From Hyphochytrium catenoides (Eukaryota; Protista; Hyphochytriomycota): 35,577 bases of DNA. The stretch spans positions 1 through 35,577 of the forward strand of contig FLMG01003716.1 of NCBI GenBank assembly GCA_900088475.1, in the 5' to 3' direction. Shown one piece after another: positions 2,478-34,100 of the stretch (position 1 is its first letter; each line of letters opens with the position of its first letter). Position numbers and translations under genes: made by a program. The notes under the pieces were generated by a model. The model did not search any database. It was given only the letters and a program-made list of their open reading frames with translations, and had not been told where the DNA came from.

Positions 2478-3641
2478 ATGGACTCTCTGCACAACTTTAC
2501 CTTTCCTGTTCCAGAGCTGGACCTGCAAGGCACTGTTCTCTCTCTAGAGAGTCAGGCCAAGAAACTGTTCATCTACACGGAGGAGAATGTTAAGGTTGGC
2601 CTTGAGCATTCGAAGGTATGAGTAGATGCCTAAAGCTAGAAAAGCGTGCGGGCTGGCAGGTAGCAGTGGAGGATGTCGTGTGCATTTGAAGGTAGTCGTC
2701 AGAAAGCCGGTGAAAGAGTGACAAACCTATGTAAAAACCTAAAAAGTACGGGAGCAGCTAACATGTTGCATGGGGAGCCCAATTGAAGCAGAAAGCGGCC
2801 TGCTGACAGGGGCAACGGAAGGTGGATAGTTATAGGGAGGACAAAGGCGCGACCAAGAGAAAAGAAGCAGACTGTCAATGACAGCTCAACCTTTCCTTCT
2901 TCTCACCTGTATAGGTGCTAGTCTTAGAGCTTGAGCGTCTTATGAACTCTATCAGTCATCAGCAAGTCGCTAATGGAGCAGTGGTAGCTGGAGCGGTGAG
3001 TTATACCATCGGTTCTCTTGGCCTGTCAACTTGCTCATTAGTTCTCTCTCTCTCTCGCTCCCCTCGTGCTCTCTCTCCCTTCGATCTCTGCTTTTCTCTG
3101 GATCCTTTCATTGCGGCCTCTTCCAATTGATAGTTGCATTCTAACGCCGCCAAAAAATACAACGCCTGTAGGTGACGATGCTAGTTGGGGCTCTCTTTAT
3201 TCTATTGCTGCCCTTCTTCAGGCAGAAGAGGAAGGCTGCCATTGCAGGGGCAAAGGTGCCATCTTCTCTATCTGCCAAGGATTCAATTGGGGGAGAGAGA
3301 TCTAAAGAGGCCAGGTCTAAGGGTGAGTCACGGCATACTCGCGTTGTATCGTGCCGCATGAGATCGTTCAGTCTTATGCGTCCGCATGCGGTATCTGTGT
3401 ACCTCCTCGCTAACAACATGGACCTTTAATCTAGGAGAAGAGGCCACTAAGAGTACACCTAGCACTCCTACGCGCGCTCCAGCCATTGGGCTTATCGGTA
3501 GGCTATTTATGCAAATGACCACCTTTTGAGAGCCTTACCTTTGTCCATACTTTCCTTTCCTGCCTTGCAGCGACTCCCCAAGGAAGACGCTCGACAAGAC
3601 AGCGAAAAGCTACGACTCCATTCAACATTGACAAGTTCTAA
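2478..3641 (+). CDS. Small (about 146 aa) single-pass membrane protein of unknown function, 4 exons
   Basis: Exons 2478-2615, 2915-2995, 3172-3322 and 3571-3641 join in frame at GT-AG sites (donors gtatga, gtgagt, gtgagt; pyrimidine-rich acceptors). Product: MDSLHNFTFPVPELDLQG...GAVVAGAVTMLVGALFILLLPFF-RQKRK...ATPQGRRSTRQRKATTPFNIDKF*. One hydrophobic segment followed by a basic tail; no family recognised. Confidence 0.72.
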
Positions 3642-4095
3642 GCCCAATTCAGGATCTTTCATGTGCTCTTCCTCAGCCCCCTGACAAGACCAGACTCTCT
3701 TTCTCTCTCTACTTTCCTTCTATCTCTTTTTCGCGATGACGACCATGACGCCTGCCTAGGGTAGGAGAAAGGCCTTTTCACCTCGAAACGTCCGAGACTG
3801 ACCCAGGATGTCCTTGAGCCAGTCGATCGGCACCGGTGTACCAATAAAGAAAGAGAAGGTTGTCGATTCCGCTTCGGCTTCCTTAGCAATCCCCTTGGAT
3901 TTGGGTTATCACACCCGTCTACCCTCTCTTAAGTTTTCTTGAGGGTCTATCTCTCGTCTGCCTGCTCTCTGTTCAATCGCTGGGCCACAAACCTTACCAA
4001 ACCAGGTCTGGAACTGACCCCGGTCTTGTAAGAAAAGAGGTAGCTACACGAGAACCAAAGACGGAAAGAGCTAAATGATATAAATCTCTTCTCGC

Positions 4096-6559
4096 TTACA
4101 ACTTTCCTAGTCCAAGGTTTCTCTTGGACAGTGTTTCTTTCGCTCCTTGATACTCTAGATCTAGTCGATCTACTAGCTCTTGAACTGTGGGAATATCGTC
4201 GACGTTCATCACACCGTGTCCTACAGTAGAATAAGCGATTGGTACAGGCGCGGGAAAGTTCCCGCCTCTCTCGCAGCTTTATGCTTCGGTCTCTCTGTCT
4301 CCACATCTTCACTTTGTCCAGCTTCCTTCGATGTCTTATGTTTACACCTCTCGTATCTCTTTTGAAGCCTTACCTGCTGACCAGATGTCTGCCCATGGGC
4401 GCTTCTCCTTTGGCTTAGGTTCTCCTTCGAAGAGGTGGTCCTCAGTTCCCAGCCCCTCTCCATAAATATTATCAGGGTCGAGGCCGCAGTCTGTCAATGA
4501 CTTTCGGAGGAAGTTGGCATAGATCCCTGTATGTGGGGAGTTTTCTTAGTACTAAATAATGACGGTGAGCAATCCAGACGACATAGAAAACTCAAGGATA
4601 GAGACACAAAAGAAGAGCAGAAGAAGAGTTTATAAGGTCAGCAAGGATAAGCCTTTTGAACGAGGTGCTGCCAGTGAGGATGTATGTCTCCATAACGCGA
4701 AAGCCCTACGAGGGTCGCCCAGCGCCGTTTCAGCCTGATAGGGGCGGCGATGCGTACCTGATATTTTGTCGGTGTAAACAGTAGGAAGGAAAAATGGTGG
4801 AGGACCCGATTGCTCTGTTCGTATCATGTCTATAATAAAGGGAGACAGTATGCAAGGTTGGCGATGGAGGTTTTCTTTTTTGCATGTCGTGCTTCTGAAC
4901 TGACCTTTGAGTCTCTGGTCTGCCATACTTTCTGCAACGAGTAACACAAAGAGATCAGAGAACAGCCAATTAGAGCCAAGCAAGCCCCGCTGGAGGAAGC
5001 TGAGATGCTTATCCAGGACAGCACTTGAAAAACTTCAGGGTTGACATGTGAATAAAGTATAAATTGACCTTGCACGCAGACAGAGATCGAACTTTGACGG
5101 AAGACGCTCACTGGAAAACACCGACCGCTGAAAAGAGAAAGGAGGACAGAAAGTGTACCTTTCGTAGCCATGAACCTGGTCCCCATATCTGATCATAAGT
5201 GTGTGCAGCAGGTGAAGGAGTTGATGGTGGAGAGAAATGATCGAGGGAGGGGGGTTGCATTCCGGCAGATACTTAGTCACTGGAGATGATCACGATTCTC
5301 AGTAGCACGGATCCTACATGCTAGATCGGCTCCTAATGCTTGTGCGGCCAGTATCGACTCGCCAGTCGACAATGCACCCGCTAGAATGATGGTTTTGTCG
5401 AAGAATTTCCGCACCTGCAGAGAAGTGTTCCAAGGCCCGGACACAGAAAGTTAGAACGGGTTTGGGCAAAGTTAGACAAAGTCGATCTGGAAGACCAAGG
5501 AACCTCTGGGGATCAGTTTGATAGGTAGAGTGACAAAAGAGGCGGCAAATGCACGATTAGGCGTTGAGCACGGCTAAAAGGTAAGTAAACCAAGGCGATG
5601 AAGCAACTGACGGCTGGCAGAAGGGCAAAAGCTGAGGCAGCTCCTGCGTGCCCTCCAGCACCAGAGCAAACAAGGATCAAGCCATCCACTCCTGCCGCTG
5701 CGGCCTTCCTAGAAGAGCAATAACGTGAGAGAGAGAGTAGCTCATAAACGTTCTCCATCAGTCTTAGGCATAATATCATTTCCCCTGTCCAGTCTCTCTC
5801 TTCGGACGTTCCTACTATTTATGCGTCAAGCTCTAGCTTTACGCCTCTTACTTTGCATGGACCACATTCGTGACGTCGTGGAAGACGACCCCTCCGTAGC
5901 TGTGAACCGCGTCGATGACTTCCCGGACGGCCCCGAGTGAGGTGATAACGATGGGAACTTGATATTTTACTATCTTTTCCAAGTTCTGCTGCAGTCTTCA
6001 GCGGTTCGCAGAGCCATAAGAGCCATGTACAATAGAAGAGATTAGGAAGAGTAGGACATCAAAGAGAATGGAAAGTTGAGCATGGTAGAGATCTACCGTC
6101 GCTATGCGAAAGAGATTCCGGAGGACCACTATATCATATAGTCAAGATGGAGCTCTGACCTGGGGTTAGACTTGTGAACAATGAGGTTGACTCCATAGGG
6201 GGCGGTCGGAGCCTTAGCCTGCAGCTTCTGCGTGATGTCTTTCAGCCAGTCATCCAGAATATCGTCATTTCTAAGCGCGTCGTAGATGAGCTCAAGTGCT
6301 GAGGATCAACAGCCCACATACAGGGCTTTGACATAGCATATTGTGCTGTTATTACCGTGCGTTTAACGCTGGGAAAGTGCCCACCACTCCCGATCTGCAG
6401 GTAGCAGTTACCAAGTCAACCCCTGATACTAGGAACATGGGTGCGGCAATGAGCTATGGAGAGAGAGTCAGAGTCCAAAGGTGAGCACGGTCTGCAATAA
6501 TTACAGGGACTCACCGGCAGACGAAGGTTAGCTCGAGTTAACAGGCCTGGAAGCGGCAT
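4096..6559 (-). CDS. Nitronate monooxygenase / 2-nitropropane dioxygenase family flavoprotein, about 11 exons
   Basis: Spliced translation gives MPLPGLLTRANLRLP|LIAAPMFLVSG...GVVGTFPALNAR, PYGVNLIVHKSNPR, VPIVITSLG...VHSYGGVVFHDV, GVDGLILVCSGAGGHAG (catalytic His motif), IILAGALSTG...LGADLAYMGTRFMAT, WADIWSAGHGV and ...LGLGKL* (TAA at 4098-4096). All junctions are GT-AG and phase-compatible. Confidence 0.93.
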
Positions 6560-7320
6560 GGCTCAGAGAAATGCTTCTGGAAAATAGCTTAGCCTTAAAC
6601 TGGCCGCACTTAAATGGTGACTGCTGTCAGGTTTCACTGAGAGACGGCAGGATGCAGAACAAGATCCCTTGCTCGCAGTCTGAAGCCTCTGAATAACATC
6701 ATCCGGAGCTTCACCTCTCAACATCGCCATCGGGCGGCGCTCGAGCTTGGAGAAGCGCTCCACCAGCAGACGAAAAGATTCTTCAGAAGCCATCAAAAGA
6801 GTCCAGCAACCTCTTTCACGGCTGCATTTGGCTCGGAGGCCAACGGGCTAAGAGATCTTGACACCAAAACTAACCCCAGGTGTTTGAAAGATTACTAGCT
6901 ATTGATTATCTTTATCTGACCATTGACCAAAAATGCTAACTGAAGCTTTCATGCTTTTCTTTACTTCAAAGCTTTTCGTAGCAGAAAGTCACCAGTGTTT
7001 AGGTCTAAGGAAGGAGGTCTCTCAAGAGGTTCAAGAAACATTCAACGGCGGAGGAATTTAGAAACATTCATGAGACCATTGCCATATTCCTAATCCTGTA
7101 GGGAAAGAAGATTGATATTACGGTTTAACAGCCGTTATAATTCCGAATCTATTAGTAGAAGTTCAGAAAAAGGGCCTTGGTGCGCCTTGATGTTCTTTTC
7201 TCAGAAGGGCAAGGAGGAGGAGGAGGAGGAGGAAGGAAAATGATGTCTCTCCCTTTTCTACTACTTGTCGTTCCTTTCTTCCTCCCCTGCCCTCCTTCCT
7301 TGTACAGTACACAGGCTGCT

Positions 7321-7747
7321 TTACTCTCTCTCTCTCTCTCTCTCTCTCTCTTTATCTCTCTCTCTCTCTCTCTCTCTTTATCTCTCTCTCTCTCTTTCTC
7401 TCTTTCTCTCTCTCTCTCTCTTTTTTTTGCTCTTTGTTCTTTCTCTTTTTCTCTTTTTCTCTCTTTCTCTTCTTCTCTCTTTCTCTTCTCTCTCTCTCTC
7501 CCTCACACTAACTCTTTCTCTTTCCATTCCTCTGTCTCTTCTTCTTCCCCCTCTCTAGCTCTCTCTTCGTCCCTCTCTCTCAGTTCCCAGTTTCTCAGCT
7601 ACATTCTCTATCTTCTTGTTCCCCTCAAAGTCAATCATCATCTCTGCGCTCTTCATTCTTTCGGAACAAGCCGTAGCAGCAGCAGGAGCAGGAGAGAGAA
7701 TCAGAAGAGCGGAAGACAGACGTCAAGCGACCAACCCTCTCTTCTTC

Positions 7748-7805
<58 letters not shown>
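7321..7805. repeat. Long (CT)n / polypyrimidine microsatellite cluster upstream of the E2-Tubby gene
   Basis: (CT)n-rich at 7325-7580 and a near-perfect (CT)n run at about 7751-7804; source of the spurious LSLSLS ORFs. Confidence 0.95.
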
Positions 7806-7808
<3 letters not shown>

Positions 7809-8096
7809 AAACTCCTCACACTCTGCCTTTACTCTCAATCTTCTTCGCCCGTTGCGTCACTGCTGCTAAAGTTCCTTGCGCAGCGCTTCTGTACCTGGAA
7901 AGCGTCCCAGAAGCCGCGCGACATTAGGTTGTCTTCCCTCCAGATTGCGGCGACTTCCTCTCTCTCTCTCTCTCTTTCTCTTTTTCTCTCTTCTTCCTTT
8001 CTTTCTTTTCGCTATTAGCGCCTTTCTTACTACATCGTTGAGCCTGATGAATTGACAAAAGCAGAGAGAGAGAGACGCGGTGAAGCTGCGAGCGAT

Positions 8097-8212
8097 ATGA
8101 ACCTGCTGACCGTAGATCCGCTGTCTATGGAGGAGGAAGAAGGAAGACTCGGAATCCTCTCTAAAGCCCGTGACAGGTAAGGGAAAAGAGACAGAGAGAC
8201 TGAGTGAGAACC

Positions 8213-8262
<50 letters not shown>

Positions 8263-11200
8263 GACAGAGAAGGAGATGCACGAGGAGAGACTCTGCTCGG
8301 AAGGGAGAAGACTTCAATGCACGTGCTAATGCTAAAAATGCCTTCCCGGTCTAGCGTCATCGGCTCCGATTGCTCCTCCGAGCCCGAGGAAGAGGCACTC
8401 TGCGAGCTGAGGAACTATGGAGACGATGAAGAGAGGAGCGAGCCAAAGAAACTAGAGCCGGAAGATACCGTAGCAGAGACAGAGAAGGAGAAAGATACGC
8501 TAGAGGTGGAAGAATGGGTCCTGTGCCGACGAGCAGCGCTGCAGGCGTTGCAGAGAGAGGCAAGGGAATGCTGGCGCAGTCTGCGGCCAAGTTGCAGGTA
8601 AAGCATGAAACACATCAGGAAGTGCCGGGCAAGACAGCTACATGCGTATTCAAAGCGGATGAAGAGAGGACGGAGAGAAAGAAGAAAAGCAAGAAGAACG
8701 AGGAAGAGAGAGAGAGAAAGAGAGAGAAAAGGAGAGAGGAGAGAAAGAGCGCGAGAAGTAGGGTCAGGCAGCAAGCGAGAAGCCTAGCGTCTTAGGGATC
8801 AAAGGTGATAAGCCCTGGAGCACGAGGAAGGACAGGTGATGGCAAACTGTCCAGGACATGAAAAGGGGGAAGATCTGTCCATCGGCTGTAGACGTCGCAA
8901 CTGGTCATTCAACCTTTCCTGACAGCTTCTCTTTTCACTATCTCGCTCTCTTTCTTCTTCTTCACTCCGACGCTTCTCTCTCTCTCTCTCTGTGTGGCTC
9001 TGCAGCGTTGGCCCTGTGCCAGTGGGCGCGACCTCTGTCGATCCATTCCATTGGCAGCTGGTTATCCCGCTTCTACAGGAGGAGGAGGAAGACGAGGAAA
9101 TGTATGTCAACCGCTATTCTAGCCGAGCTAGAGCAAGAGAGAATGTGATCATCGGCATACATTTTCCATACAACTACCCTCTGAGACCACCCATGCTGGA
9201 GGTGCAGTCACTCTTAGACGGGATTGCAGAAGAAGAGGAGGAGACACAGCCAGAGACAGAGGAGATGATTGATAGAAGAGAAAAGCCATCCGTGTATCGG
9301 AACAGATGCATTTGTCCCTACCGCCAGCCTCAGGGATGGAGCCCAGGACAGTCCATTGTCGATCTTATCTCCGAAATCTTCTCGGGCGTGGTCAGAGAAG
9401 GAAGAGCGTACCTGAAGAAGAATCTGCACTGTGTCTTCGAATCTGCATTGTGCGAGTCCTCTTACCTGCCGCTGCTGGACAGGCCTCTGCTGCCTTCTAT
9501 CGGTCAAGAGGCTGGGGGAAGGAATAAATGTTTCCAGGCTCTCAGGTAAGAGCGTGACCAGCAGAGACAGGATAACATCATAGATCCCAATCTTTCTTCG
9601 CTATGCTTGCCTCTGGGCTGGTAATCACCTTCCTATTTATGCTTTTAGATGGGATAACGCGCTCAAGAGAGGAGGCACGAATGGACTGAAACTCTGCAAC
9701 TGTTTGTTAACTTTGCCTGGGAGGAAGACTGAGCGAAGGTAACAGCGGCTTCTTTTGGTTGGATCATCCATGGCCTCCATCTATCCCTGGGGAAGCCGTT
9801 CTTAGAATGGGCTTGCTTGCAATCTCTCTCTTACTCATTCTCTCTCGCTGTCTCTCTCTCTCGCTCTCGTTCTTTTTCTCTCGCTTGCCCTCCTTTCCAT
9901 GGTCTCATGGTCTCTCTCCTTGTGTCTGTGTGCGTCACCTTGCTCTGACAAATGGTTGAGATCCTGTTGGTAGCTGGATTCTTCTGACTGAGTCTGCTTT
10001 GTTATCTTTTATCTCACTATCTCTGGTGTTTCGCCCTGCTGCTTTTCTGTTAATCCCAGGAGTGCATATCTAAAAACTCATGTACCTGGATGGTCTTGCG
10101 GCTCTCAGAGCTGTCAGTACAGTGGACAAGCTGCAGAGGAACAAAGAGCAGCGATCCCGCAGGATGATGAGTCTTCGTGTTGGTATCCTTGGCGGACAGG
10201 GATGTTGAGGGAGGAGGAGGCAAAGGGTCTGAAGTGTTTCATCTGTCGTGCAAGAGATATCCTCGGGGCCGATGATTACGATGATCACTATGACTTTGTG
10301 CCTCTTCTGAAGGACTCTCCCCGCCCGCAAGAGTAAGAGAAAGCGCTTTCTCTCCTAATTATCCTCCTATCTCTCTTTCTTCCATTCCCTCCTTAAAGAT
10401 GCATCTCTGGCCCCTCGCCCTATCGGGTGCGTTTCTTCTGAGGTTAGAAGGAAAGCCAAACCTTCAATACGCTTAGCTACGAAGGCTTTGTCTGAGTCAT
10501 CTTCGCCTAGTGTTTATGTCAGTAGCATGACGGGCACACGCTGGTTCTGGGCGGAGGCATTGAGCTGCTCGGCCTGCACTCTGCCCTTGAAGACACGGAG
10601 TATTCAGGCAGCTGAGGTACTCCATGCTGCTCAGAAGGAATGGAAGGAGATCAGAGCGAGGTAGGTTTTCCTTCTTGCATCTCTCCAAGCGTTTTGTGTG
10701 TCTCTCTCTTTTTCCTTCTCCTTTTCTTATCGCCCTTATGGCCTGTGTCCTGCATGGCTACTTACTACTTTGCTCCCGGTCCTACGATGCCACAGGATTA
10801 TCAGCGACAATGGGCTGTGCAGCTCTTGCGGCATTGAGTCAGCTCACAGCTACTGCTCGGGCGGTTCTGCTGCCAAACTTGTCTGCGCCAACCGGTCGGT
10901 CGATTCGCTTCCTCTCCTCCATCCCCCGTTTTTATGTCTCTCTCTGTCCCAGTTCCTTCTTTCCTTTGGTCTCTTTCTTTCTTTCTCTCTGCCTAGGAGG
11001 GTCTCGGTCACCATTCTTCAGGTGGCAGTAGTTAGCCGTCCTGCTGCCCTCTCTCTTTCCATAGACTAATTGATACCTTCTCCTTGCAGACGATGTATAA
11101 CTAGGGACAAGTCCGTCTCTTACATCTCCCTCGCGGACGTGGCCCAAGAGCAGAAGCTCTTCTCGGACCTTCTTCTGTCGAGAGCAGAAAACTATGGAGA

Positions 11201-14200
11201 TTCCCAAGGAAGTGGCGGAGAAAGAGAAGGATCTAACTCCCTCTGCTCTCTACCTGGGAATTCTCCGGATCTCTTCACGTTGAGGGCTACCGATGACGCT
11301 TGTGTGGGGCTCTACCAGAGGATGAAGAGGCTATCAGGAAGAGTGGAACAGAGCGAAGACAGTGGGCCCACATTGCAAGCGAGCTCGAACTATTCAGACG
11401 CTACCATTGATGACGAAAGTAACTCTAAAGGTTGAACTTTGCCTCCTTTCTGCGTCTTCGCCATTCTTCTTTGCGCTTCCTTATAATCCGCCCGTGCCTA
11501 GCCTACCTTTTCTTACACTTCTCCACTGCTATGCCTATCTTACTCTGATGGCCTCAGGCAATGCAGAGTATAAGCTTCCAGCAGACTGGTCCTATTCCGC
11601 AACCGAAGGAGTGCCGGAGGGTCTCAACCTCGTTGAGCCTTTTCTTGTTAAGCCCAGTAAGCTTATGGATATCGTCTGTCTAACCTTGTGCCGCACCTCC
11701 CTTTCCTTTCTGTTCCATATCTCTCGGCTGCTCTTGCTAGCCAGTCTGTTTTGTCTCTCTGCTATGTCCCCGATGTCCGCCTGGAAGCTCGCCATTTGCA
11801 GCCAATAATCATTTGCTCTTGTTGCATTGGGCTCACGGTCCCCAGTATGACACAGTGTCAATTTTTCTGTTCTCTACTATTGATACTGTTGACACTTTCC
11901 CCTCGCACAACCCCTTCTCATCCTTGTCTTGAGGTTATTCTGACTGATATGGCTGTCTATCCAGTCCCAAAGGGCGCCGGAGTCGTCCGATGTTGCATGG
12001 TAGTGAAGAAGAGTCCGACGATGTTCACATACTCTCTTTATCTCGATGACGGGAGGACAGATGGTTTGTGCACGTTCCCAAAGGCCTCTCTTTTCTTTGT
12101 GCGCTTTTTCGATGCTTATGCTTCTTCCTGTCTTAGCTTCCTGGCTATGAACTTCTTGTGCCTATCAGTTTGTGAACTTAGAGTCTCATCCCTCAGCTTC
12201 AGCTAGTGTGCCCGGCAACTTAAGCCTGCTTCTCCATTTTCTCTAGCGCTAGATATGGAGCAGCTTTTTCAAGATCGAAGAGATTATTCCTCAAGAAGTC
12301 GCTATCCTTTCAGCGTCGCCACAGACACTGAAGTTGGAGCATCACACCCTTCAGGTCAGCTAAAAAGTTAGAGATACGTCCACAAGCGCCTTCCCTTCTG
12401 TCCTGTCGCACGCACTCATGTATGGGCTCGTTGTCTCCTCACGCTTGTGGAAGAGATGCCCTTTCGTCTATCACTTAACATTACATGTCACTGTCTCTCA
12501 CTGCCGGCATTGTTGCTCGCTTTACACAGGGATGGTGGGCCTCAACATCCTGATGTACCGACAGCGGATGATACAGAATGAGGACTTGGGACGGATGGTG
12601 GTTGCGATGGCTGCTGCTAAGCGACTTGATCTTCCTTCCCTTCCAGCAGCAGTATGGCAGGTAAGACGCGATGTAACCCTTTCCCCTGTTCGTCTTTGTT
12701 TAGCAACTCTGTCTCTTTCACGCCTTCTGGCATGCTGTAAGTGCTTCTCACCTTTTCGCGATTGCGAGTTTCGTCGTTAGGGTTCTCCCTAGTCAGAATG
12801 AGCTCTGAGAAATGAAGTATCTTCTCTAAGGCTCTTCCGGACGGACCGCCTTTTGCCTTGTTTTGCATCTAAAAACACCGCTTCCTCGCTGCTCTTCTTT
12901 CTCTTAGTATATTTATCAGATGGCCCAAGGTGTTCCTCGGCCGTCTACTCGCCTTCTATGGGCTCGTGAGTCGTTGAAGACTGTTAATATTTATGGCAGG
13001 GGTAACATTCTTACTAGAAGAATGAACGGTAAGTCAATCATGATGTATATAGGGCGCATCAGCAATGACAGCGCGCCAAGCATAATCCAGAGTGAAATGG
13101 GAGATCTCTCCCCTAGAGAGAGACTAGAGCGAAAAAGAGGCCAAAGGAGGAAGAAGGGAAAGAGCAATGCACTAGAAACAGCGATGGGGCCCTTATGATG
13201 TTGAGAGGTCACTTAGGAGGAGGTCGAAGTTCATCATTAGCGGTGATAGCTCGAAGCTGTGTCCAGCAAAGACTGAATCCCGGTTGATCTTGATAACTGC
13301 AGGAGGCCGTGGACAGCATGTCGGAACCGTCCGCTATCATCACACCTTGGGACAGGGCAAGCCTAATCTCGCCAATGGTCATCTAAGGAGCATCCTCTAT
13401 GCCGTTGGACATCCTGCCTCTCTCCGTTCAAGACAACGTCAGGGCTCAGGCTCTTCTGACTCCACATCAGGCTCCTCTATGAACGCTAAAGAAGACGGTA
13501 AGGGTAGTCTTCGTGATCGTCTCGCCAAACGCAGCCCAGACGGCATACAGCTTTATTTGCCCTCCATGTCTCTCGTACCTATCCTCAGCTTGTAACATTC
13601 CTCTTACAATTTCCTTCAGGTTCAACACTTGCCTGCCGCTTCAAGGCAATCGGCTCTATCCGCTGGAAGTTTAGTCGTCTGGGACTTTGGCCTAACAGCG
13701 GAGAGGTTCACATCCCGCGATTGAACGATTTGCCAGCGAGAGATCCTCTGCAAATTGGCTCCGAAGGTAGACTAAAGGGCAAGCGTTGCAGGCCCTTCCT
13801 CTCTTCTCCCCGCTCAGCGCTCGTTGATAGACTTCATCTTGTTTTTGAGGATGTAAAAAAGTTGGTCCTCTCGGTCTCTTTCCTACTCTCAATGCATGTG
13901 GCTCGCCTTAGTGCGGTTGTGTGCAATTATTTTAGTCCGTGACCTTGTCTCGTTGTTGGTCTTCCACGTTTGCCTACCGTTGGTCTCCTATCTCTTGCCG
14001 GTTCTTCCGTTTAGCTTCATCTTCTCTTCCGCTCACCTTCACTTACGGGCCCATTTTTGGCCCCTCACTCTTGCATGCTGACGGCTGGTCCTTTCTGTCC
14101 TGGCAGTTCCACGTAAGATTCATCACTTCTCGACGGAGACAGCGCCCGTTCTGGACGACACGATATTAGAACAAACGCTGCAGGAGCAGAGGGGTATCCG

Positions 14201-14492
14201 CCTCATTTCACGTCCTCCTCTGTGGAGAGACGACCTTCAGGCCTATACTATTTCTTTCCATCCCAACGGCAGAGTGACGAAGGCCTCAGAAGGGAACTTT
14301 CAGATCATCTCCCCTTGCGAGCTGCAGGAGCCAGAGGTGGAGAACTCTCGAATTGAGCACGAGCAAGTGCTGCTGCAGTGCGGACGCTATGGAGAGATAA
14401 AGGACCGGTGGCACGTAGATGTGCGCTATCCTCTTTCTATCCTCCAGGCCTTCGCGATCTGTATCACTAACCATGGCATCGTTGACACGTGA
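8097..14492 (+). CDS. Putative UBC (UBE2Q-like E2 fold) - Cys-rich - Tubby-domain fusion protein, 17 exons, about 994 aa
   Basis: Exons 8097-8176, 8355-8597, 9006-9545, 9649-9738, 10060-10332, 10399-10426, 10593-10660, 10796-10894, 11090-11430, 11558-11656, 11965-12063, 12247-12354, 12530-12660, 12908-12965, 13303-13497, 13620-13766 and 14107-14492 are all GT-AG and phase-compatible (2985 nt in total). N-terminal part: ALQALQREA...DPFHWQLVI...IHFPYNYPLRPP...CICP...QGWSPGQSIVDLISEI (E2 fold). C-terminal part: FLVKPIPKG..VRC...PPLWRDDLQAYTISF..GRVTKASEGNFQI...VLLQCGR...DVRYPLSILQAFAICIT (Tubby). Each domain call is more secure than the single-transcript model. Confidence 0.7.
8215..8260. repeat. 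(GA)n microsatellite inside intron 1 of the E2-Tubby gene
   Basis: Near-perfect gagaga run; a second GA-rich tract lies in intron 2 at about 8700-8750. Confidence 0.9.
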
Positions 14493-14832
14493 GAGGTAAG
14501 GCTTTGAAAGACTCAAGCCAAAGGAGATGAGAGAAGCATGTGTAAGATAGAAGGAAAAATCTACCTTTTTTATTTATAGTGTACATAGTTAACGGCATAG
14601 CTGCCGTCCGATAAGTGGCAAATAATGGAAGTGTGGCAATGATCACACGGAATGTTGAGAGATAGGGGCAGAAGGCTCATCAAGGGCCTGACAGCCTAGA
14701 GAGGAAAAGAGAAGATGGAGTAAATACATAGGAAGAGCTTTCTGTACAGTCTGTAGGACGGCGGAACAGTCAATATGAGGTCTAGCAGTAACTAAGAAAG
14801 GCTCAAGCAGCAGCAAAGACAATGCTGACCCT

Positions 14833-17800
14833 TTAGCACCGCTCGAACACTCGATAGAGCTTCTGCAAGCAGGCCACCTCGGTGACCGCAGTCGCAGAAG
14901 AGAGAGTAACACTTGGACAAAGCTCTGTGCGAAAGGCTGGATAGAGGCAATGCTCTACCGTCTTAGCAGCAGGATGATCTTTAGTGAGGTGACTCGACAG
15001 CGGAGCGTCAGCGGAGGGAAGGACAGAGAATAGCATCCCGAGCTCCTTGGCGATGCCATCCAAACAGGCCTGCTCCTCATCCCAGTCCACCTATAGACCC
15101 ACAAGTTAGCACACACATGCTGTCTTGTTGACTTTGATCGCGTCAGAGCAAGACGAGTCAAATCTGAATGAGAAGAGGTGACAAGGTCCTGTCATATGCG
15201 AAGACTTTGTCTCACCTCCGTTGCTAGCCTCAGAACAAATGAGGGAAGAGCAAAGGTAGAAGGCTTATAGTCATCCAACAAGTCAGGCAAGCTGTGCAGG
15301 TATCCCTCTGGATCTATATCGATTCGATAGTACTCGCCCAACAACTCTCGCTGACTGACGAGCAGCTCTGCTACTTCCTGCAACACGTAAAGCTTCAGTG
15401 ACAGCCAAAGCAAAGATATGGGAAAGATTCGTCTAACTAAAAGTTGCCTTAGCTGACGAGTAAAACAAAGAGCTAAAGCCGTGTCAGAAGGGATGGAGGA
15501 CATACTGACCTTCGCCAGATCCTTTGGGTCTCCATCCTCTTCCGTCCACCCCGAGGACGGATCCAAAATGGCAGCCTCTGCCATCTCGACGACGGGAAGC
15601 CCTTCCGAAAAGCTGACAACAAAAAGATATTAGACCAAGTAGGTAGGGCTAAGACTACCAGCTCCTGAAGAATGAACAAGGCTTGACGGGCTCGCAAGCA
15701 CACAAAGAGGGACAACGGGTACCTCCTACACGCCGAGAGGCTGAGGTTGACTAACAGAAGGTCAGGCAGAGACAACGCTTGGAGGACGATATTGCAAAGG
15801 CAGTTGCTGTAACCAAAGACAAGCTGTGCACCTTATCATCGGCATTCTGCTGAAGCTCCTCAACGTCAGCTGATAGAAGAGCTCGGAAGCCAGAAGTCTA
15901 TGGTTCACAAGCAGAAGCTTCGTCCCGTTTTGCACCAAGGAATATTCAGAGTCCACGAGCCCCACGTAAGTGTGCTTCTGCAAGATCTGATGAACAAGGC
16001 AACACCCTTAGCTTTAAAGATGAAAATATCTTTATCTTTACGCACGGATGACCAAATGTCCAAGACGCAGTAAGGGAAGATGAGTTAACATAAGATATCA
16101 GCTCTTAGCGGTCAGACATAAAGTTAACCGGGGGGCACTTTTATAGTCAAATCAAGGTTCCTTACCTCCCTGAGCCCCTTGTCCGCCTTCTGCTCCACCC
16201 CTTTCAAAAGGTTCTGCAAGCTCGTCAGCTGAGGAACCTCTGCTTCCCGTGCCTTCCGTAGACTTCTAAGTTCAGACTGGGTTAACTCCTGTCCACCTTC
16301 TTCTGCGGCAAGTAAGTTAGTTTCTTGCTTCGTAGTATATAGGTGTCCTCTCCAACGTACGTGGAGCAAGGGTGATACATTGATGATACATTTGAAGCAA
16401 GCGCGGGGGTGTTTCTTCAAAGAAAGTCTAAACAGTTACACCGAGAGTCACCGTGCGAAGGAACACTACCATAGATACAGATCGTGAAAAGTACCTGCTT
16501 TGCTCTGGCTAGAACCACCGTTTTCCTCCGATACATGTGGTGAAGACCGAAGGAGGAAGCTGTCAATTCGCGAGGTGCGATGGTCTGTCCGGACGAGCTT
16601 CTGTGGTGCCTTCACAGCCCGGTGGCGACAAGATATATAAAAAATAGGTGCAGATGAGCAGCATGAAAGGAAGAGAGATAAATGTGACGTCCGAGTGAGA
16701 TCAATTCTGCGACTGACTCGAGGCAACCATAAGTTCCCGTCAGACAACCCAGGTTAATAGCTCAAGCACATAAAGGGTTAGTGCCACCCCATAATCTCAA
16801 GGGACCACAAATGGGAGCCTTACAGCAGCCTCGGAAGGCGAGCACGCAATGCAGGAAGAGCAGTAGAATCCACGATGGACGATCACAACACAATAATACC
16901 TTGCTTGGCTCATACTTTGACTTCTTCTTCGCTGTAAGCTCGACCTGCACCAGTCTCTGCTGCGGTTCCCCCTGTGCGGTAGATACGCTCAGAGGAGCAG
17001 CTTTCAGCTTCCAGCAAAGGGCAATTGGCACGTATATACCTTCCTCTTCTTGCGGGAGTCATCCCCCTCACTTGGTCTGTCACTTTCGTCTTCTGAACCA
17101 CTTCTTCCGTCAATTTCTTCTATATCACCTTTGTTCCTCTCCTTCTGGGAAAACGGAGAAGAAGTTTGGAAAAGAGCTTGGGTCTGAAAAGTTCGGGAGG
17201 AGTTTGCTCCTTGTAAAAGCTCCGCAATTTTCAGCTGCAACTTATCTGTCACATCCTGCTCAAAGAGGAAGTGTACCTAAATGGAGACCATGCCCTGTTA
17301 GTATATGCAACAACTTTTCCTCCTTTCCTCCGCAGTCTACGTGAACCCTTGCCCGACCGCTATCAAGTCAATTAAATAAGCCTTTCCGCGGCAATGTCTG
17401 CTTTGCCAGGCCCTTCACTTTAACCGGATATGCCGCCACCCTACCATTCCGTGAACATCAGCAAATTTCTTTTCCTTCTTATTATTGTCACCTTGCTGTC
17501 CTACCTCTCTCTTGGTGGGGTGTACGTTGACGTCGACATTACCCGACGGCAAATCCAATGCCAGGTAGATGAAGGGAGAAGAATTCTTCGGCAAGTACTC
17601 AGCATACACGCTCTCTAGGGTCCTCTTTAGGCCTGGATTCTCGACTAACCGCCCATTGATGAACATGATAAACACCCCTCTTTTCAGGCTGCGGGCGGGA
17701 AGGGCAAAGTTAGTCGGAGAGAGAGTTCCAAGTAATGAAAGTAAAATCAGACCGTCCCCCTAGCTCTAACGCTGAGTTGAAGTCGAGGCAATGTTGAGGG

Positions 17801-19544
17801 AAGCGAGCTGAGTCAGGCGGATGGGGGTGCTTGGGCAAGGAACAATGTTATTAGAACTAAAAGCCGATAGCAGGAGACAGCTGTAAAAAGAAGAAGTCGG
17901 GCCAGGAGAAGTATGGCAGATGGGCGGGGAATCTACCTATAGTTAGCGTTAGAGATGTATCCCTTGGCGCGGAAGGAGAGTCTATCCATGGTCTGGGAGC
18001 TCTTTAGTTCTGCCTCGGAATGATTTGAACAATACGGGGACAGGAGTGGATTTTAGGGTAGCAGGACTGGTAAGAAGTATGGAGCAGGGAAGAGAGCGAA
18101 GATAACGGCAGACGGGTGCAGAGTGCCAGTCATAGTCCGTGACGAAAAGAACTACCTTCAGACCATCCTTCTTGGCATTCCAAGGCTATCAGTTCCCTAG
18201 CAACAGCTTGACCATAGACTGCTCTAATGTTGTCCACCGTGGTACATTTCATTGGCGTCTTCAGGTCAGCGTTGGCATCTCCGATCTACGTAGATGTTTA
18301 CGCCCAAGGTGTATTATCAGCACCCAAGCGGAGGCAAGGGAAGAATGCAAAGACAGTAGCATAGACGAACTCATAATTAGGCCTGGGCGAAGCCGCAGGA
18401 GTGAACTGAGAGATACGGACCCAAGCTAGATAACAATGGGCTTTGCTTTAGTGCAAACACCTTTTTGCAGGTAAACGAGACTCCTGTAGCACCATAATGT
18501 ATGGCATAGCGCTGCACAACTTCCAATATGCGGTGGTACTCCTCATTTGGGTTCTTGAAGGCGCGCTTGCGAGTAGGGACGTTGTAAAACATGTCCTCGA
18601 CCTAGAGCGTCAAGTGCAAAGGTCAGTTGTGCTGAGAATGGGAAGAGGAGAAGCAAAGCAAAGCGCAAGAAGTTGAAGAGAGAGTGATATACTCACCAAA
18701 ATTTGAGTGCCAACGACGCCTGCGCAAGGTTTGGGTTTGGCTTGTTCTCGAGGAGCCCAGGGGAGCAAGGTTCCGTCCGAGTACCTAGCCCTAGGATGAT
18801 AGGCCGATGAGGCAGGTTGAGGGTCAGGTGGTTAGCTCTTTCATTGGACCGGGACCTGTCTGACGGCCAGGGGCCACTAGCTGCTGGTTGATAACTCACG
18901 GACAAGGAGATCAGAAAAACTTATACCAGAGGAAAAGGCGAGGAGACTCCAAACAGCTAGGATAAAGAGAAGGGGATCTAGGAGCAAGGTCACCTGTATG
19001 CACAAGGCTGATCTTTGGTTTTGGAGGTGATGGTGACGTGAGCAACATGGGAAATACTTGCCAACGCCTCTCCTCTGAAGCCAAAAGTGACAATCTGCTT
19101 CAGATCTTCAAACTTCTTCAGTTTGCTAGTTGTGAAGCGCTCGCAGACTATGGGCATATCGGCGACCTTTCGATGAAACGTATCAGTGGTAACCAAGAAG
19201 CAGTACGATAGAAGGCAAAAGCGGCTAACAGGAGTCCTCACATTGATCCCATGTCCATTATCCTGAATCTGCAAGACCTTGAGGCCGCCAGCTTTGGCTG
19301 AGACGGTGATAGACGTGGAGCCGGCATCCAGGCTGTTCTCAAGCAGCTCCTTTAATGCATTCGCGGGGCGATGGACAACCTCTCCTAAGGGGATATAGGA
19401 AGCGTCAGCAATATGGGCAAAGGGTTTTCCAGCACATGGCGTAGTACCGGCTGCAATCTTGTTGACAACGGTTTCATCAAGACGGCGTATTTTGCCTCCG
19501 CCCTGAGCTTCGGTCTTTCCTGCTACGCAGCCCACAGCAGTCAT
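14833..19544 (-). CDS. MLH1: DNA mismatch repair protein MLH1 (MutL homolog), about 16 exons
   Basis: [67 protein letters not shown] (MutL GHKL ATPase signature), [39 protein letters not shown] and the MLH1-specific C-terminus LYRVFERC*. Exon boundaries in the linker (16500-17070) are uncertain. Confidence 0.98.
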
Positions 19545-28210: not shown

Positions 28211-29915
28211 TTAGTAGGGCCGATAACTGCGATCTGCCCTTGCAGCCTGCTGTTGATGGCTACGATAGTTCTGATAGCCTCCTCCTCCACCTCCGTATCC
28301 TTCGTTTCCGCCGTAGCCATAGCCCTCATAGCCCTGGCCATCATCTCCTGCTCCTTGACCGCCCTGGCCGTAGCCGCCGTAGCNNNNNNNNNNNNNNNNN
28401 NNCATAGCCTCCGCCATAGCCGCCACGTCCACCGTAATCTCTTCCTCCACCTCTGGCCTCTTTGGGCTCGGCCCGCTTTATCTCTACTTGTTTCCCATTG
28501 ATCTCATGCGACCGAGCAATGACACTGGAAACGGCGCTCTATAGATAGGATAACATACATTGCAGCGGCCAAGATGGTAAGCCCAGATCTCTACCAGTTG
28601 GAACGCAATCGATCATGGGAAGTAGTGAACTTGTCATACCACAATGGCAAGCCAAATATGACAGAAGACAACTGATTGTTCGATGAAGGGAAAGTCCAAG
28701 CATTGTTAACAGGGCGAGCGTCAATTGGCACAAAAATCTTACCTCTTCCTCAAAGGTGACGAAGCCAAACCCTCTTGACCTCTGGGTATCGCGGTCAAAC
28801 ATTACAACGGCATCCGTGATCTTGCCGAACTGGTCAAAGTAGTTTCTGAAGTCCTCCTCCGTCACGGATGGTGCTAATCCTCCCACAAAAATTTTCTTGG
28901 ACTCAAAAGGAACACGACCCCCGTTCTGTCTATCTCCAAAGCCTCCACCGCTGTTTGCAGGACGCAAAGATTGATAGACGTTAGAAATACCAAGATATAG
29001 GGAAGATGAGGTCGGCCACATACTGGCAGATTAAAGCAGAAAACGCGCTGCGTCCTTACCCGAGGTGAGCCTTGTCTCTAGGAACAGCTCTCTTGACTTC
29101 CACATTTCTTCCATCAACCGTATGGACGTCCGCAATAACCTGATCAATAACTATACAGAGTGGCGTGACAAAAATTTTAGGACAGCAGGACATATGGCGT
29201 CTCGAGCTAGAGACTATAAGAGACAGCGGACGCAGCAGCAAGGATAGAATGAGGAAGAAAATCCATATCTTTTGGGATGAGACGACGGAGTTCTTTAGCC
29301 CTCCTCTGTTTCGTTTCTTCCTTACCGGAAGGATCCTCATAAGTGACGAAGCCAAAGCCTCTTGGTTGACCAGTGAATTTGTCCTTCATCAGCGCGCAGT
29401 CAATAAGCTTTCCGTACTTCTCGAAGTGCGCCCTCAGGCCGTTCTCTGTGGTCTGTATGGATATAAAGACTATGAGCTACGCGACGAGGTGTGCTGTTTA
29501 ATACGGAGTAATCTCCACAGTTAACTGGCAGACTCTTGTCCACCCTGGTTGCCAACTCCATAGAAGGTTCAGGGTCAAGAGAATGCGTCCCCCCAACATA
29601 GGCACATGACAACGCTTTAAACGCGACTACAGCTGTTCTTGCATGCCAAGCCCAGGGACATGAGGGGGAAACAGATACAGATTAACGACATGCCGCTGAT
29701 TGTCCCATTCATACCTCCCAAGAAACGCCTCCTACGAAGAGCTTGCCCAGATAAGACTTGTCATCCCCCTCTTGTATGGCACCTTGTGGCGGCGGTGCAT
29801 CTGACATCTGCTGATTGGGATCATTCCCTCCCTCGCCCTGGAAGTATCCTTCCTCTTCTTGATGTTGTTGCTGCTGCTGCTGGTCCATCTCATAGACTAC
29901 ACCTACGGGATCCAT
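28211..29915 (-). CDS. Two-RRM RNA-binding protein of the hnRNP A/B/D - Musashi/DAZAP1/Hrp1 type, about 5 exons
   Basis: RNP2 motifs KLFVGGVSW and KIFVGGLA; RNP1 motifs PRGFGFVTY and SRGFGFVTF; VEVKRAVP and VEIKRAEP; Gly/Tyr-rich tail ending RADRSYRPY* (PY-NLS-like). The last exon contains an assembly gap. Confidence 0.95.
28384..28402. other. Assembly gap (19 N) within the GGY-repeat tail of the RNA-binding protein
   Basis: Run of N. The reading frame differs either side, so the true gap length is probably not 19. Confidence 0.97.
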
Positions 29916-31102: not shown

Positions 31103-34100
31103 CTAGGAAGCGATAACTATCTTCGAGATTTCTGACTCCTTCGTTGGTGGACTGTCCGTTAGCGTCCCATACAGATCTGTGTGAGCTTTGAGAACTTGGC
31201 TGCAGAAATCTGCATCTTCGTGGAGAATCTCATCGTCAACCTCATCCGAGATGTCTTCTAAGCTTATTGACTGTATGTGCTCCTCTAAATACTTAAGCAG
31301 ACGCGGTTGATGTTGATCTTGCCTTTTCTCTACATTGGCTTTTGAAGCTTTCTGCTCCATACCTGTAATGCCGCTCGTCTGATCTTGCACAAGTGGGCTG
31401 TAAGCGAATCAATGGCAGGCGGGAAGGGAGCCCGATTGAGAACAGATACAAAGTAGAAGGAAAAACGTCTTTCAAAGCCAAAGAGAAGACGAAAAATAAA
31501 CGTACATGTGGTCAATGGCTTCAATACCCCCGATGACAGGCCTATAGATGGAGCTAGGAACTGTCCTATCGCTGGACACAACAATTCCACCCATGCCTCT
31601 TCGCTTGAGCCTCATGGTCTCAACAGCAGTGGCAGGCTCACAACTTGAGCCAGCAAGCTCCTCCTTCCTGAATGTCTTCTTCAGCTTCACCTTTGCTGCC
31701 GCACGAATGCTGTCCACAAATGAAACTGTCTCTTGATAAGAGGTGCTCCACACGCCGTACTGATAAATTTTGTGCGACTCCCTTTTAGTTCCTTCCCTCA
31801 GATCTATCTTCCTAGATTGCGCAGCGTGGACAATGTGGCAGCAGAGCCCACACAAACTTAACCGACAAGAAGTGCAAAAGTACCGAGCCACGTGAGTCTT
31901 CGTAGGGAAGGCGCATGCGCTGATCTCGCAGGTGATAACCTTGGCCGGCACAGACTTGAGAATCGCCTGCATTGCTGCTTCCCCTGCATCTTCCTTGCCG
32001 ACACTCTCTTGCAAACTCGCAGCTTTCTCTTGAAACCGTGGGGTGAGAAGCTCCTTTGCGGCAGCTGCAAAGTCCTTAACCGTGAGATCAGATAGCATTA
32101 TTGGGGAGGGTCCCACTCCTGCCTGCTCCATAATATGGCCCATGAACTGAGCGTCTGGGAAGACGGGGAGGACCAGAGTTGGCTTTCCTGCTTGAAGAGT
32201 GAGGAAGGAATAATAGGGTGTCCCACTGTGGACAGCAGCAGCGCAGGAGCTTATCAGAGCTTTGTGAGGCACTTTGGAGAAAAAGAAGACGTTGCTTCCT
32301 CTGAAAATGCCTGTGGGGAAGTGGCCTCCAGTCTCTACTATGAAGGATATTCCAGTTTGGTTGGAGGCCTTGATTATCATCTGAAAGAGGGAGTTTGGGG
32401 CGGTTTTGCTCAAGGTTGGGAGCTCCTAATCAGCATCCAAAAGGTTAGCTGGCGACTCAAGAGGTAGGGAATGGAGGAGAAGAGGATTCAGCGCCCCCTG
32501 ATTAGTATGGGTCTAGGCAGCCTGGCAGAGAGGTCATTCGTAGTGCAGACAGCTGCACGTAGTAAAGAGTACATCCGTTCGATTTGACTTACCGCCTTCC
32601 TGACCGCGACGAAGATAACTTTTCCTTCTCTTTGACTTATAAACTGGAAGATGGCGGCAGTAAGTTCGTCTTCCTGGAGAGCCTTCACCTGCTCTTGGGT
32701 CTCCTCCCGCTCAAAGCAGAACCCAATAACCTCTATATGTGGACCCCACGTCTGGGGCTTGGGATAGATTGTTGGACTCCAATCATAAAGGATGGGAGTT
32801 GCGCTAGAGAAGATAAAGTTCTTGTTTCTATTCAGCCAGCCGGCTTGCAGGGCAGGGAGCTTCAGGTCCTTCCTTACTTTGTTGATTAAGATGAGGTTTT
32901 CTTCCAAAATCTGACGGGACATCTTCACATGGCTATCTAAATTCCCTGCTGGACTGTTGGACTTCAGATAGTTCGAGGGGTCCAAGGGGTGCGCGAACTC
33001 TAGATTTGGATGTACGGGCTGTCGGACAGAAGGAGTTGCATACCCATTAGGGCGTTCGGGCCTATCATTAGACTAACTGATGACTTGACATCGCAAAGCC
33101 AGAATGACGCTTGCTTGGAACAATGGAACCGACTAGGGAAGAAAGAAAACAGAGCCAGCAGGTATGCCTAATAATAGATGAGGAAAGGAAAATGAAACCC
33201 AAGAGCCCCAGGCCATTACGAAGAAGAGATGCGAGGAGGTATCCGGTAGGATATAACAGATGGCTAGCAGGAGCAGAAGGTAGACGCCAATCTGACCTGA
33301 TTGTCAATAACAAAGATAGGGATACGCTTTGCTTGTGCCAGATGAATGAGAGCAGTTATCGCCAGCTGTGGCCTCGCGATTATAAGATCCGCCTGGAAGG
33401 CTGGACCAGGCATACAATGTCCGTTTCCATGAGGATCTCTGCAAGTGGCCGAATCCAGGTAGGACTGGACCCTGACGTGGTCGGTAGCGTTCCAATCATC
33501 CTTACTCTTGAGGACGTCTGGGCTTGGATGCGCTGAGGTATTCATTTTTTGCTTGTCTCTCTTCCGGGAAGAAGAGGAAGATGAGGAGTCACTTGTAATG
33601 CTTTTCTCTCCTCTTAAGGGATAGAACTCTAGCCCATCGCTTAAAATTAGGTGTCGATTGAGTTCCGATGTTGCTATCCTATGCAGGAAATGGGAAGGTG
33701 ACAGCGTCAAACGGAAATGGTGCACAGGAAGCGGTACTTTGGAGAGAATGAAGAACTGGTGAACCCAAAGCAAAGCCGGCACTATGGGAACGGGCCAGAG
33801 AGGAAGAACGTCCGCCAAAGTCTCAAGCTAGGGAAGAAAGGGAAAAAAAAGGTAAGGTCATAATTCTAACGAGAGAGTAGATCTGTGCCAGCGTTCTCCC
33901 AAGCACAGGCAAGAGGAGGAGGAGGGGAGACGATCTGTGAGGGACAGAGAACAAAGGGACTTAAGATAGGGAGAGAGAGAGAGATGTCCAAATCTCTGCC
34001 TTCGAAGCAGCGTAACGTGATCACGGACCTTACTCGATGACCTCGACGTTTGAGGCCCTTGGCCAGGCCTGGAAGGCAACAGGAGGTGAGAGCCCAAAAG

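Follow-up and report, generated by a model that had tools for sequence, protein, structure and literature searches.

The locus described here lies on contig FLMG01003716.1 of Hyphochytrium catenoides (Hyphochytriomycota; GenBank assembly GCA_900088475.1). The window, meaning the whole stretch of DNA that was analysed, covers positions 1 to 35,577 of the forward strand (35,577 nucleotides) and consists of eukaryotic DNA rich in introns, with a G+C content of about 50% and (CT)n/(GA)n tracts. Two domains are encoded on its plus strand between positions 8097 and 14492, an E2-like (ubiquitin-conjugating, UBC-fold) domain followed by a Tubby domain, and several splice junctions were placed within each. 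Cysteine-rich exons lie between the two. A single plus-strand gene spanning 8097-14492 is judged the likeliest arrangement, with moderate confidence, and its working model, built from intrinsic signals, has 16 exons and would encode a protein of 1054 amino acids.

Domains encoded at the locus

The C-terminal third of the Tubby domain is encoded by the last exon, 14107-14492. This exon matches the Pfam family Tub (PF01167) at 84.4 bits, against a cut-off of 27, with an E-value of 1.3e-23 over profile positions 168-253 of 256. A search of the PDB with the same exon retrieves TULP1 and Tubby structures at E about 1e-11, and its Atlas features fall in Tub clusters at 0.96. Judged by these matches, the exon is an unambiguous Tubby C-terminus. 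A preliminary description of this DNA had named the exon as such, together with an open reading frame (ORF) at 8992-9549, and both are present as claimed.

The upstream part of the Tubby domain was located with a custom hidden Markov model (HMM). Metagenomic Tubby loci were fetched by a pattern for GRVTxASVKNFQ (120 loci), 42 ORFs with a complete domain were kept, and the model was made from 161 sequences taken from these environmental ORFs and from the domains of 120 stramenopile Tubby proteins. It aligns to the locus in two colinear pieces. The first (positions 26-121, 20.2 bits, E 1.6e-8) covers exons 11558-11656, 11965-12063, 12247-12366 and the start of 12530-12660, and the second (positions 195-274, 70.3 bits) lies on the last exon. 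Three junctions of the Tubby half are considered validated because the model aligns colinearly across them. The donor first used for exon 11 (12355) was dropped and GTTAGA at 12367 was taken, since the Tubby homology then reaches HMM position 121.

No match to HMM positions 122-194 was found in the 212 residues of exons 12-15, and this unmatched middle reflects either divergence or a wrong choice of exons. The exons there were placed by strong splice sites only, with GTAAG donors at 12661, 13029 and 13498 and YAG acceptors. As modelled, the Tubby domain is divergent, its first and last thirds being conserved and its middle expanded. The GKLRS...FTIYD strand aligns to GQLKR...ILMY, with Lys changed to Gln and Arg to Lys; this is the best colinear alignment and is of low confidence at this point. 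The two residues of GKLRS that bind phosphoinositide, Lys and Arg (K330 and R332 in mouse Tubby), are not retained in this low-confidence alignment.

Exon 13 contains the peptide GVPRPSTRLLWARESLKT (12929-12982), which has a match (E 0.009) to ubiquitin-derived Affilins over the GIPPDQQRLIWAGKQLED motif. The segment ends in ...RRMNGG at the 13028/13303 junction. A Pfam search of this exon gave no match in support of a ubiquitin-like insert, and such an insert within the Tubby barrel is possible.

The E2-like domain is encoded by exons 2 and 3. An E2 HMM was made from 105 distinct E2 ORFs of giant-virus loci, fetched by a DNA pattern for DYPFKPPK. It scores 14.9 bits on spliced exons 2 and 3 (E 9e-7 for one target) and 13.8 bits on exon 3 alone. 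The maximum was 2.6 bits in 1000 shuffles and 8.4 bits in 8004 ORF pieces from unrelated eukaryotic contigs, and the next best of 780 ORF pieces in the window reached 3.0 bits. The profile had been chosen through the YP..PP motif, and this motif was therefore masked as a control. With YPxxPP masked, the remainder scored 5.4 bits, above the 3.7-bit maximum of 1000 shuffles, and SVYRNRCIC aligned on ninsngsiC, which places KPS at the HPN position.

Across the exon 2/3 junction, helix 1 (end of exon 2) together with the first strands (start of exon 3) is colinear with E2 profile positions 28-64 (3.4 bits; the best of 1000 shuffles reached 1.8), and the junction is supported by this alignment. Three colinear E2 blocks each score above their own 1000 shuffles. 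The N-terminal helix and the YPxxPP strand-loop occur in colinear order, and IHFPYNYPLRPP aligns to the E2 motif. The HMM alignment sets the candidate cysteine of exon 3 on the catalytic Cys and WSP on WsP, with the Cys-x7-WSP spacing kept. The HPN triad upstream of the active-site Cys is absent, and KPS is found instead. Matches of exon 3 in a phmmer search of the PDB (E 0.1-10) are nearly all E2 enzymes, aligned at IHFPxxYPxxPP, and the Atlas features of the exon fall in UQ_con clusters at 0.90.

General searches did not recover this domain. Pfam returned no match for exon 3 (UQ_con, PF00179) at E up to 1, a word search found no homologue of the ORF, and an exhaustive phmmer search against 1.84 billion representatives gave 0 matches. 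The AlphaFold2 model of exon 3 as a single sequence has a pLDDT (predicted local distance difference test) of 37.9, too low for use. The UBC-like character ascribed to the ORF in the preliminary description is thus recovered by the purpose-built E2 profile and not by Pfam; of the profile and model checks it had proposed, carried out here on single exons, the Tub match of the last exon was obtained, and neither a UQ_con match nor a usable model of exon 3 was. These failures, along with the loss of HPN, would suit an ORF that is not a working E2 fold (a decayed relic or a chance resemblance) lying in a long unrelated 5' region of a Tubby gene. This is extremely unlikely in view of the targeted HMM and its controls, a frame that is intact over 180 codons, and Atlas features and weak PDB matches that indicate one family alone. 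The product of exons 2 and 3 is, by these alignments, a real but very divergent E2-like domain that keeps the Cys, lacks the HPN asparagine and contains two acidic inserts.

The exons between the two domains are rich in cysteine. Exon 10060-10332 has a weak Anti-TRAP (CxxC) match in Pfam (E 0.006). Further downstream, the locus carries C-x2-C-x35-C-x2-C-x5-H-x2-C-x9-C-x4-C, provided that 10566-10577 is coding. This C4HC3 pattern is of the cross-brace (RING/PHD/ZZ) kind and marks a candidate finger. Exon 10796-10894 alone has weak matches to two Pfam families, CEBP_ZZ at E 0.017 and PHD_pln at E 0.044, neither of which reaches the cut-off. No F-box was found by Pfam in any exon scanned, and Rfam and bacterial promoter and terminator scans returned nothing relevant.

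Exon structure and the bridge between the halves

The features of the working model are collected in the table.

Table. Exons, motifs and the preferred bridging intron of the working model at 8097-14492
Feature	Coordinates	Strand	Evidence
Exon 1 with proposed ATG (tentative; exon 2 has in-frame ATGs too)	8097-8176	+	Donor CAG/GTAAGG; in-frame codon score best of three frames
Exon 2, acidic N-terminal region and E2-like helix 1 (8536-8574)	8355-8597	+	E2 profile alignment across splice junction
Exon 3, E2-like (UBC-fold) core	9006-9545	+	Custom E2 HMM, weak PDB matches, Atlas features
Exon 3 motif FHWQ	9046-9057	+	
Exon 3 motif IHFPxxYPxxPP	9154-9189	+	
Exon 3 motif KPS (for HPN)	9283-9291	+	
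Exon 3, candidate catalytic Cys	9313-9315	+	
Exon 3 motif WSP	9337-9345	+	
Exon 3, two acidic inserts		+	
Candidate extra exon, 90 nucleotides, in frame, phase 2 in and out	9649-9738	+	TAG acceptor after pyrimidine run, GTAACA donor
Cys-rich exon, C-x4-C (10097-10114) and C-x2-C (10235-10246)	10060-10332	+	114-codon open frame in phase left by exon 3
Preferred bridging intron, 115 nucleotides	10333-10447	+	GTAAGA donor, pyrimidine-rich core 10340-10420, TAG acceptor
Linker exon with CSAC (10566-10577) and ATG 10527 (rival start codon)	10448-10660	+	Frame open 10359-10661, exon-like composition, finger pattern match
Finger core exon: CSSC (10818-10829), HSYC (10845-10856), first Cys of last pair	10796-10894	+	Weak sub-cut-off Pfam matches
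Last finger Cys, then Ser/acidic linker	11090-11418	+	121-codon open frame, no Met before 11322; codon score best of three frames
Tubby domain start (VEPFLVKP..., first strands), exons 11558-11656 and 11965-12063	11558-12063	+	Custom Tub HMM positions 26-72 span junction
Tubby strands up to GKLRS...FTIYD equivalent (GQLKR...ILMY), exons 12247-12366 and 12530-12660	12247-12660	+	Tub HMM to position 121
Divergent expanded mid-barrel with Ser-rich loop, exons 12908-13028, 13303-13497 and 13620-13766	12908-13766	+	Splice sites
Last exon, with the TGA stop and the C-terminal third of the Tubby domain	14107-14492	+	Pfam Tub E 1.3e-23; PDB TULP1/Tubby; custom HMM 70-76 bits

The preliminary description had joined the two halves through 17 phase-compatible GT-AG exons into a frame of about 994 amino acids. 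A stop-free chain of 16 exons and 981 amino acids, with GT-AG borders throughout, can be rebuilt with its bridge, and 9649-9738 makes a seventeenth exon; a chain of this kind is at chance level and is not evidence for a gene. The longest spliced ORF was determined by dynamic programming with up to 16 GT-AG introns of 60-520 nucleotides and exons of at least 28 nucleotides. Six shuffles of the region gave 3042-3486 nucleotides; other stretches of the window and the opposite strand gave 3126-4671 nucleotides. Because shuffled sequence yields equally long spliced ORFs, phase compatibility carries no weight, and the case for the model therefore has to be made from homology, coding signals and the quality of the splice sites.

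The earlier bridge was made up of two introns (10333-10398 and 10427-10592) with exons of 28 and 68 nucleotides. All of these elements are present as described, and their junctions are probably wrong. The first intron, of 66 nucleotides, had been called typical; it would be the shortest of the gene, the others measuring at least 103 nucleotides. The bridge also depends on an exon of 28 nucleotides. It was rejected for these and the following reasons. Both of its acceptors (10398 and 10592) are AAG, and all 15 acceptors of the 16-exon model are YAG. It puts CSAC, the first Cys pair completing the C4HC3 pattern, into an intron. The stretch 10427-10592 is exon-like and not pyrimidine-rich (purine 0.40-0.60), and it contains no stop in the frame of the following exon.

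Better bridges start from the GTAAGA donor at 10333 (phase 2) and end at a TAG acceptor at 10447, which was chosen, or at a CAG acceptor at 10522. A skip from this donor straight to 10796 is also in frame. An acceptor at 10564 (GAG) was rejected. The E2-like half would thus be spliced to the Tubby half through donor 10333 into exon 10448-10660.

Codon scores do not decide on the linker exon 10448-10660. The candidate exon 9649-9738 is a purine-rich block within a long intron; its codon score is the best of three in the right frame, and it has no homology support. All seven introns of the 5' half (8177-10895) are in phase 2, and nearly all from intron 8 on (11419-14106) are in phase 1. The lengths of exons 2-7 (243, 540, 90, 273, 213 and 99 nucleotides) are all divisible by three. 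This phase pattern of the 5' half may be a bias of model building or a real feature such as cassette-like exons.

A neighbouring gene on the minus strand (14833-19544) is MLH1, identified by HATPase_c_3 (E 4.7e-11) and by Mlh1_C (E 8.5e-20), the latter reaching the end of its profile. It stands tail-to-tail with the Tubby gene, with 340 nucleotides between them. Most introns of the Tubby gene are pyrimidine-rich, the exceptions being introns 1, 2 and 13, and no such richness is clear for MLH1. Introns 1 and 2 are purine-rich, in contrast to the pyrimidine-rich later introns. Long (CT)n/(GA)n microsatellites occur upstream of the gene and in introns 1 and 2 (7200-8030, 8210-8260 and 8690-8760). 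Farther along the minus strand are an ORF for an RRM protein (28542-29021; RRM_1, E 1.7e-15) and a glycosyltransferase-like ORF (31475-32413; EryCIII-like_C, E 1.9e-5, under the cut-off).

One gene or two

The preliminary description had noted no obvious intergenic space between the halves, and this holds: both domains are on one strand, without room for a normal intergenic region. The sole tract between them that looks non-coding is about 80 nucleotides long and pyrimidine-rich, with GTAAGA on one side and a YAG acceptor on the other. A TAA lying inside a consensus donor closes the frame both of exon 3 (CAG/GTAAGA) and of exon 10060-10332 (AGA/GTAAGA). On the plus strand, GTAAG occurs ten times in 8000-14600, seven of them at donors of the model. 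The frame is open over 10359-10661 and again over 11070-11432, and no in-frame Met is found between 10530 and 11321. Two gaps were measured in the window for comparison, about 880 nucleotides in a tandem pair on the minus strand (an unnamed gene, then MLH1) and the 340 nucleotides between MLH1 and the Tubby stop. The stop-to-start gaps that two genes would leave are 190 or 112 nucleotides for the two splits considered next.

The chief alternative is a pair of genes, the first encoding the E2-like and Cys-rich parts (about 408 amino acids) and ending at the TAA at 10334-10336, the second encoding a finger-Tubby protein (about 615 amino acids) from ATG 10527. This ATG stands 14 codons before the CSAC pair, and its frame is open into the finger and Tubby exons. 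A compact single ORF of the same architecture exists, with the finger N-terminal to Tubby. It is found on a metagenome contig of the Joint Genome Institute (L227:682-1755:+) and encodes 358 amino acids, with a RING finger at residues 19-64 (zf-C3HC4_3, E 6.7e-10) and a complete Tub domain (E 1e-87). RING directly upstream of Tubby in this ORF makes RING+Tubby a natural architecture outside the H. catenoides genome. The low codon score at 10449-10526 also fits such a split, as does the lack of an E2 domain in three Tubby samples, made up of 120 loci, 42 environmental ORFs and 120 stramenopile proteins. The pair of genes would, however, be separated by just 190 nucleotides, 80 of them intron-like, in a window where a tandem pair lies about 880 nucleotides apart. 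Its stop would coincide with a consensus donor, so that this GTAAGA would be a chance occurrence or used in a minor isoform only, and frame 0 is open for 56 codons ahead of the ATG. A splice acceptor just ahead of the ATG is not a clear habit at four gene starts in the window, and this feature does not separate the readings. Taken together, this division is unlikely, and of the alternatives it is the one with most in its favour.

A later division would end the E2-like and finger protein at TGA 11433, to which the frame of exon 11090-11418 continues, and would start a Tubby-only protein at ATG 11548. The ATG is ten bases before the model acceptor and in frame with exon 11558-11656, and the donor options of exon 8 (GTAACT and GTTGAA) are weaker than GTAAG. 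GTAAC nevertheless serves also as the donor of exon 9649-9738, and the stop-start gap of just 112 nucleotides is pyrimidine-rich like other introns. Such a division is very unlikely.

The least probable of all the readings divides the locus directly after the E2 exon, with the E2-like protein ending at TAA 9547 and a second gene starting at ATG 10202. The gap of 650 nucleotides would be a normal intergenic distance, and the codon score is higher past 10202 than before it. Yet the stop would lie inside a perfect CAG/GTAAGA donor, and the gap holds the in-frame 90-nucleotide exon-like block with good splice sites. Between the acceptor at 10059 and ATG 10202, 47 codons are open in the phase left by exon 3, and several out-of-frame ATGs lie ahead of 10202.

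The single gene is the preferred reading, and several results weigh against it besides the failed general searches with the E2 ORF. No orthologue was found in word, phmmer or metagenome searches. For the Tubby exon, the word search was blank and a metagenome scan gave no close relative. The in-frame ATG 10527 and the likeness of its product to the RING+Tubby ORF count on the same side. A GTAAGG sits 4 nucleotides past the true Tubby stop and a GTGAGA overlaps that stop (14489-14501), so GTAAG near a stop can be a matter of chance; an intron in the 3' untranslated region is the other possible explanation of these two motifs. Codon-usage log-odds, derived from this gene and its neighbours, are too weak to separate the models over the short bridging segments. 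The union of the E2-like domain, the Cys-rich exons and Tubby in one gene is probable, not provable. The fusion is a reasoned gene model and not a finding.

Related architectures and proposed role

The combination of UBC, finger and Tubby is without precedent in what was surveyed. The E2 HMM found nothing in the 42 environmental Tubby ORFs, in any ORF piece from the Tubby loci (120 loci, 669 kb), or in the best 120 of 2834 Tubby proteins (383-1220 amino acids, mostly from stramenopiles including oomycetes). For these best 120 of 2834, precomputed Pfam lists give Tub alone or Tub with an EF-hand, and none matches the N-terminal 640 residues of the model. These samples are small, and an E2 this divergent would be near the detection limit. 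Among the papers searched, none links UBC and Tubby domains. The preliminary description had not recognised the arrangement from known proteins and had suggested an architecture search for UBC with Tub; the survey agrees with it, the 120 stramenopile Tubby proteins having no E2.

The metagenomic RING+Tubby ORF resembles the locus in having an E3-type zinc finger directly upstream of Tubby. It differs in that its RING is a canonical C3HC4 and its Tubby domain is canonical, and it has no E2. The candidate finger of H. catenoides is C4HC3 with a 35-residue first loop, scores under the Pfam cut-offs and, if there is one gene, follows an E2-like domain.

Canonical UBE2D-type and giant-virus E2 enzymes share with the locus a colinear helix 1, xFHWQ, IHFPxxYPxxPP and Cys-x7-WSP at the same spacing. 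The H. catenoides domain departs from them in having KPS for HPN, two acidic inserts and C-terminal helices that are unrecognisable, and it scores far under the Pfam cut-off. UEV (ubiquitin E2 variant)/Mms2, TSG101 and AKTIP/FTS are UBC-fold proteins whose active site is degenerate and lacks the Cys; they act as binding modules, some of them in membrane traffic. The locus differs from these in keeping the Cys at the catalytic position. In UBE2O and BIRC6 the UBC domain is part of a long multidomain protein that supplies substrate-binding regions of its own; they have a canonical HPN and no Tubby. What the locus would share with them is a UBC domain set in a multidomain chain.

Tubby proteins are adaptors that bridge membranes, intraflagellar transport (IFT) and cargo in animals and serve as substrate receptors of SCF (Skp1-Cullin-F-box) ligases in plants. 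TULP4, of the animal lineage, has WD40, a SOCS box and Tubby, so that Tubby is tied to a ubiquitin-ligase adaptor box. The adaptor there is a SOCS box, whereas the locus has an E2-like domain. In Arabidopsis, 10 of 11 Tubby-like proteins (TLPs) contain an F-box and are able to assemble into SCF ligases, and their Tubby domain binds phosphatidylinositol 4,5-bisphosphate, PI(4,5)P2 (PMC11114105). The plant TLPs and the proposed H. catenoides protein are alike in holding Tubby in one chain with a module of the ubiquitination machinery. The plant module is an adaptor F-box that recruits Skp1, whereas the module here would be an E2-like domain with Cys-rich fingers.

The proposed product would consist, in order, of an acidic N-terminus, the E2-like UBC domain, a Cys-rich stretch with the C4HC3 pattern, a serine/acidic linker and the divergent Tubby domain. 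F-box-Tubby and SOCS-Tubby proteins suggest, by analogy, that the Tubby barrel may act as a targeting or cargo-binding module that selects the place or the partner. The E2-like domain and finger, acting in cis, would supply ubiquitin chemistry, or ubiquitin or E3 binding, to the partners of Tubby. The E2-like domain may load ubiquitin yet discharge it poorly, which is proposed because the HPN asparagine is missing. Alternatively, it may be a non-catalytic, UEV-like module that binds ubiquitin or an E3. Without the HPN asparagine, efficient discharge of the canonical kind is less likely, and the retained Cys speaks against a pure UEV-like role. Classical PI(4,5)P2 binding is made less likely by the apparent loss of the lysine of GKLRS. 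The preliminary description had proposed an E2 module tethered to a membrane- or cilium-targeting, phosphoinositide-binding domain; this was overstated, as HPN is lost and GKLRS reads GQLKR. The chances are evenly balanced that one polypeptide carries a Cys-keeping, HPN-less E2-like domain, a cross-brace zinc finger and a Tubby barrel without the canonical lipid-binding lysine.

If the locus proves to hold two genes, it would still place, beside a finger-Tubby gene, the gene of a highly divergent E2 that neither Pfam nor the search of 1.84 billion representative proteins recovered. If it holds one, the product would be a self-contained, Tubby-targeted module for ubiquitin transfer or ubiquitin binding. 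It would offer a compact natural system for studying recognition by the Tubby barrel when the phosphoinositide site is altered. It would also be a third independent wiring of Tubby to ubiquitination, after the F-box and the SOCS box, in a lineage with diversified Tubby proteins. The link between Tubby and ubiquitin would then have been invented repeatedly, with different parts.

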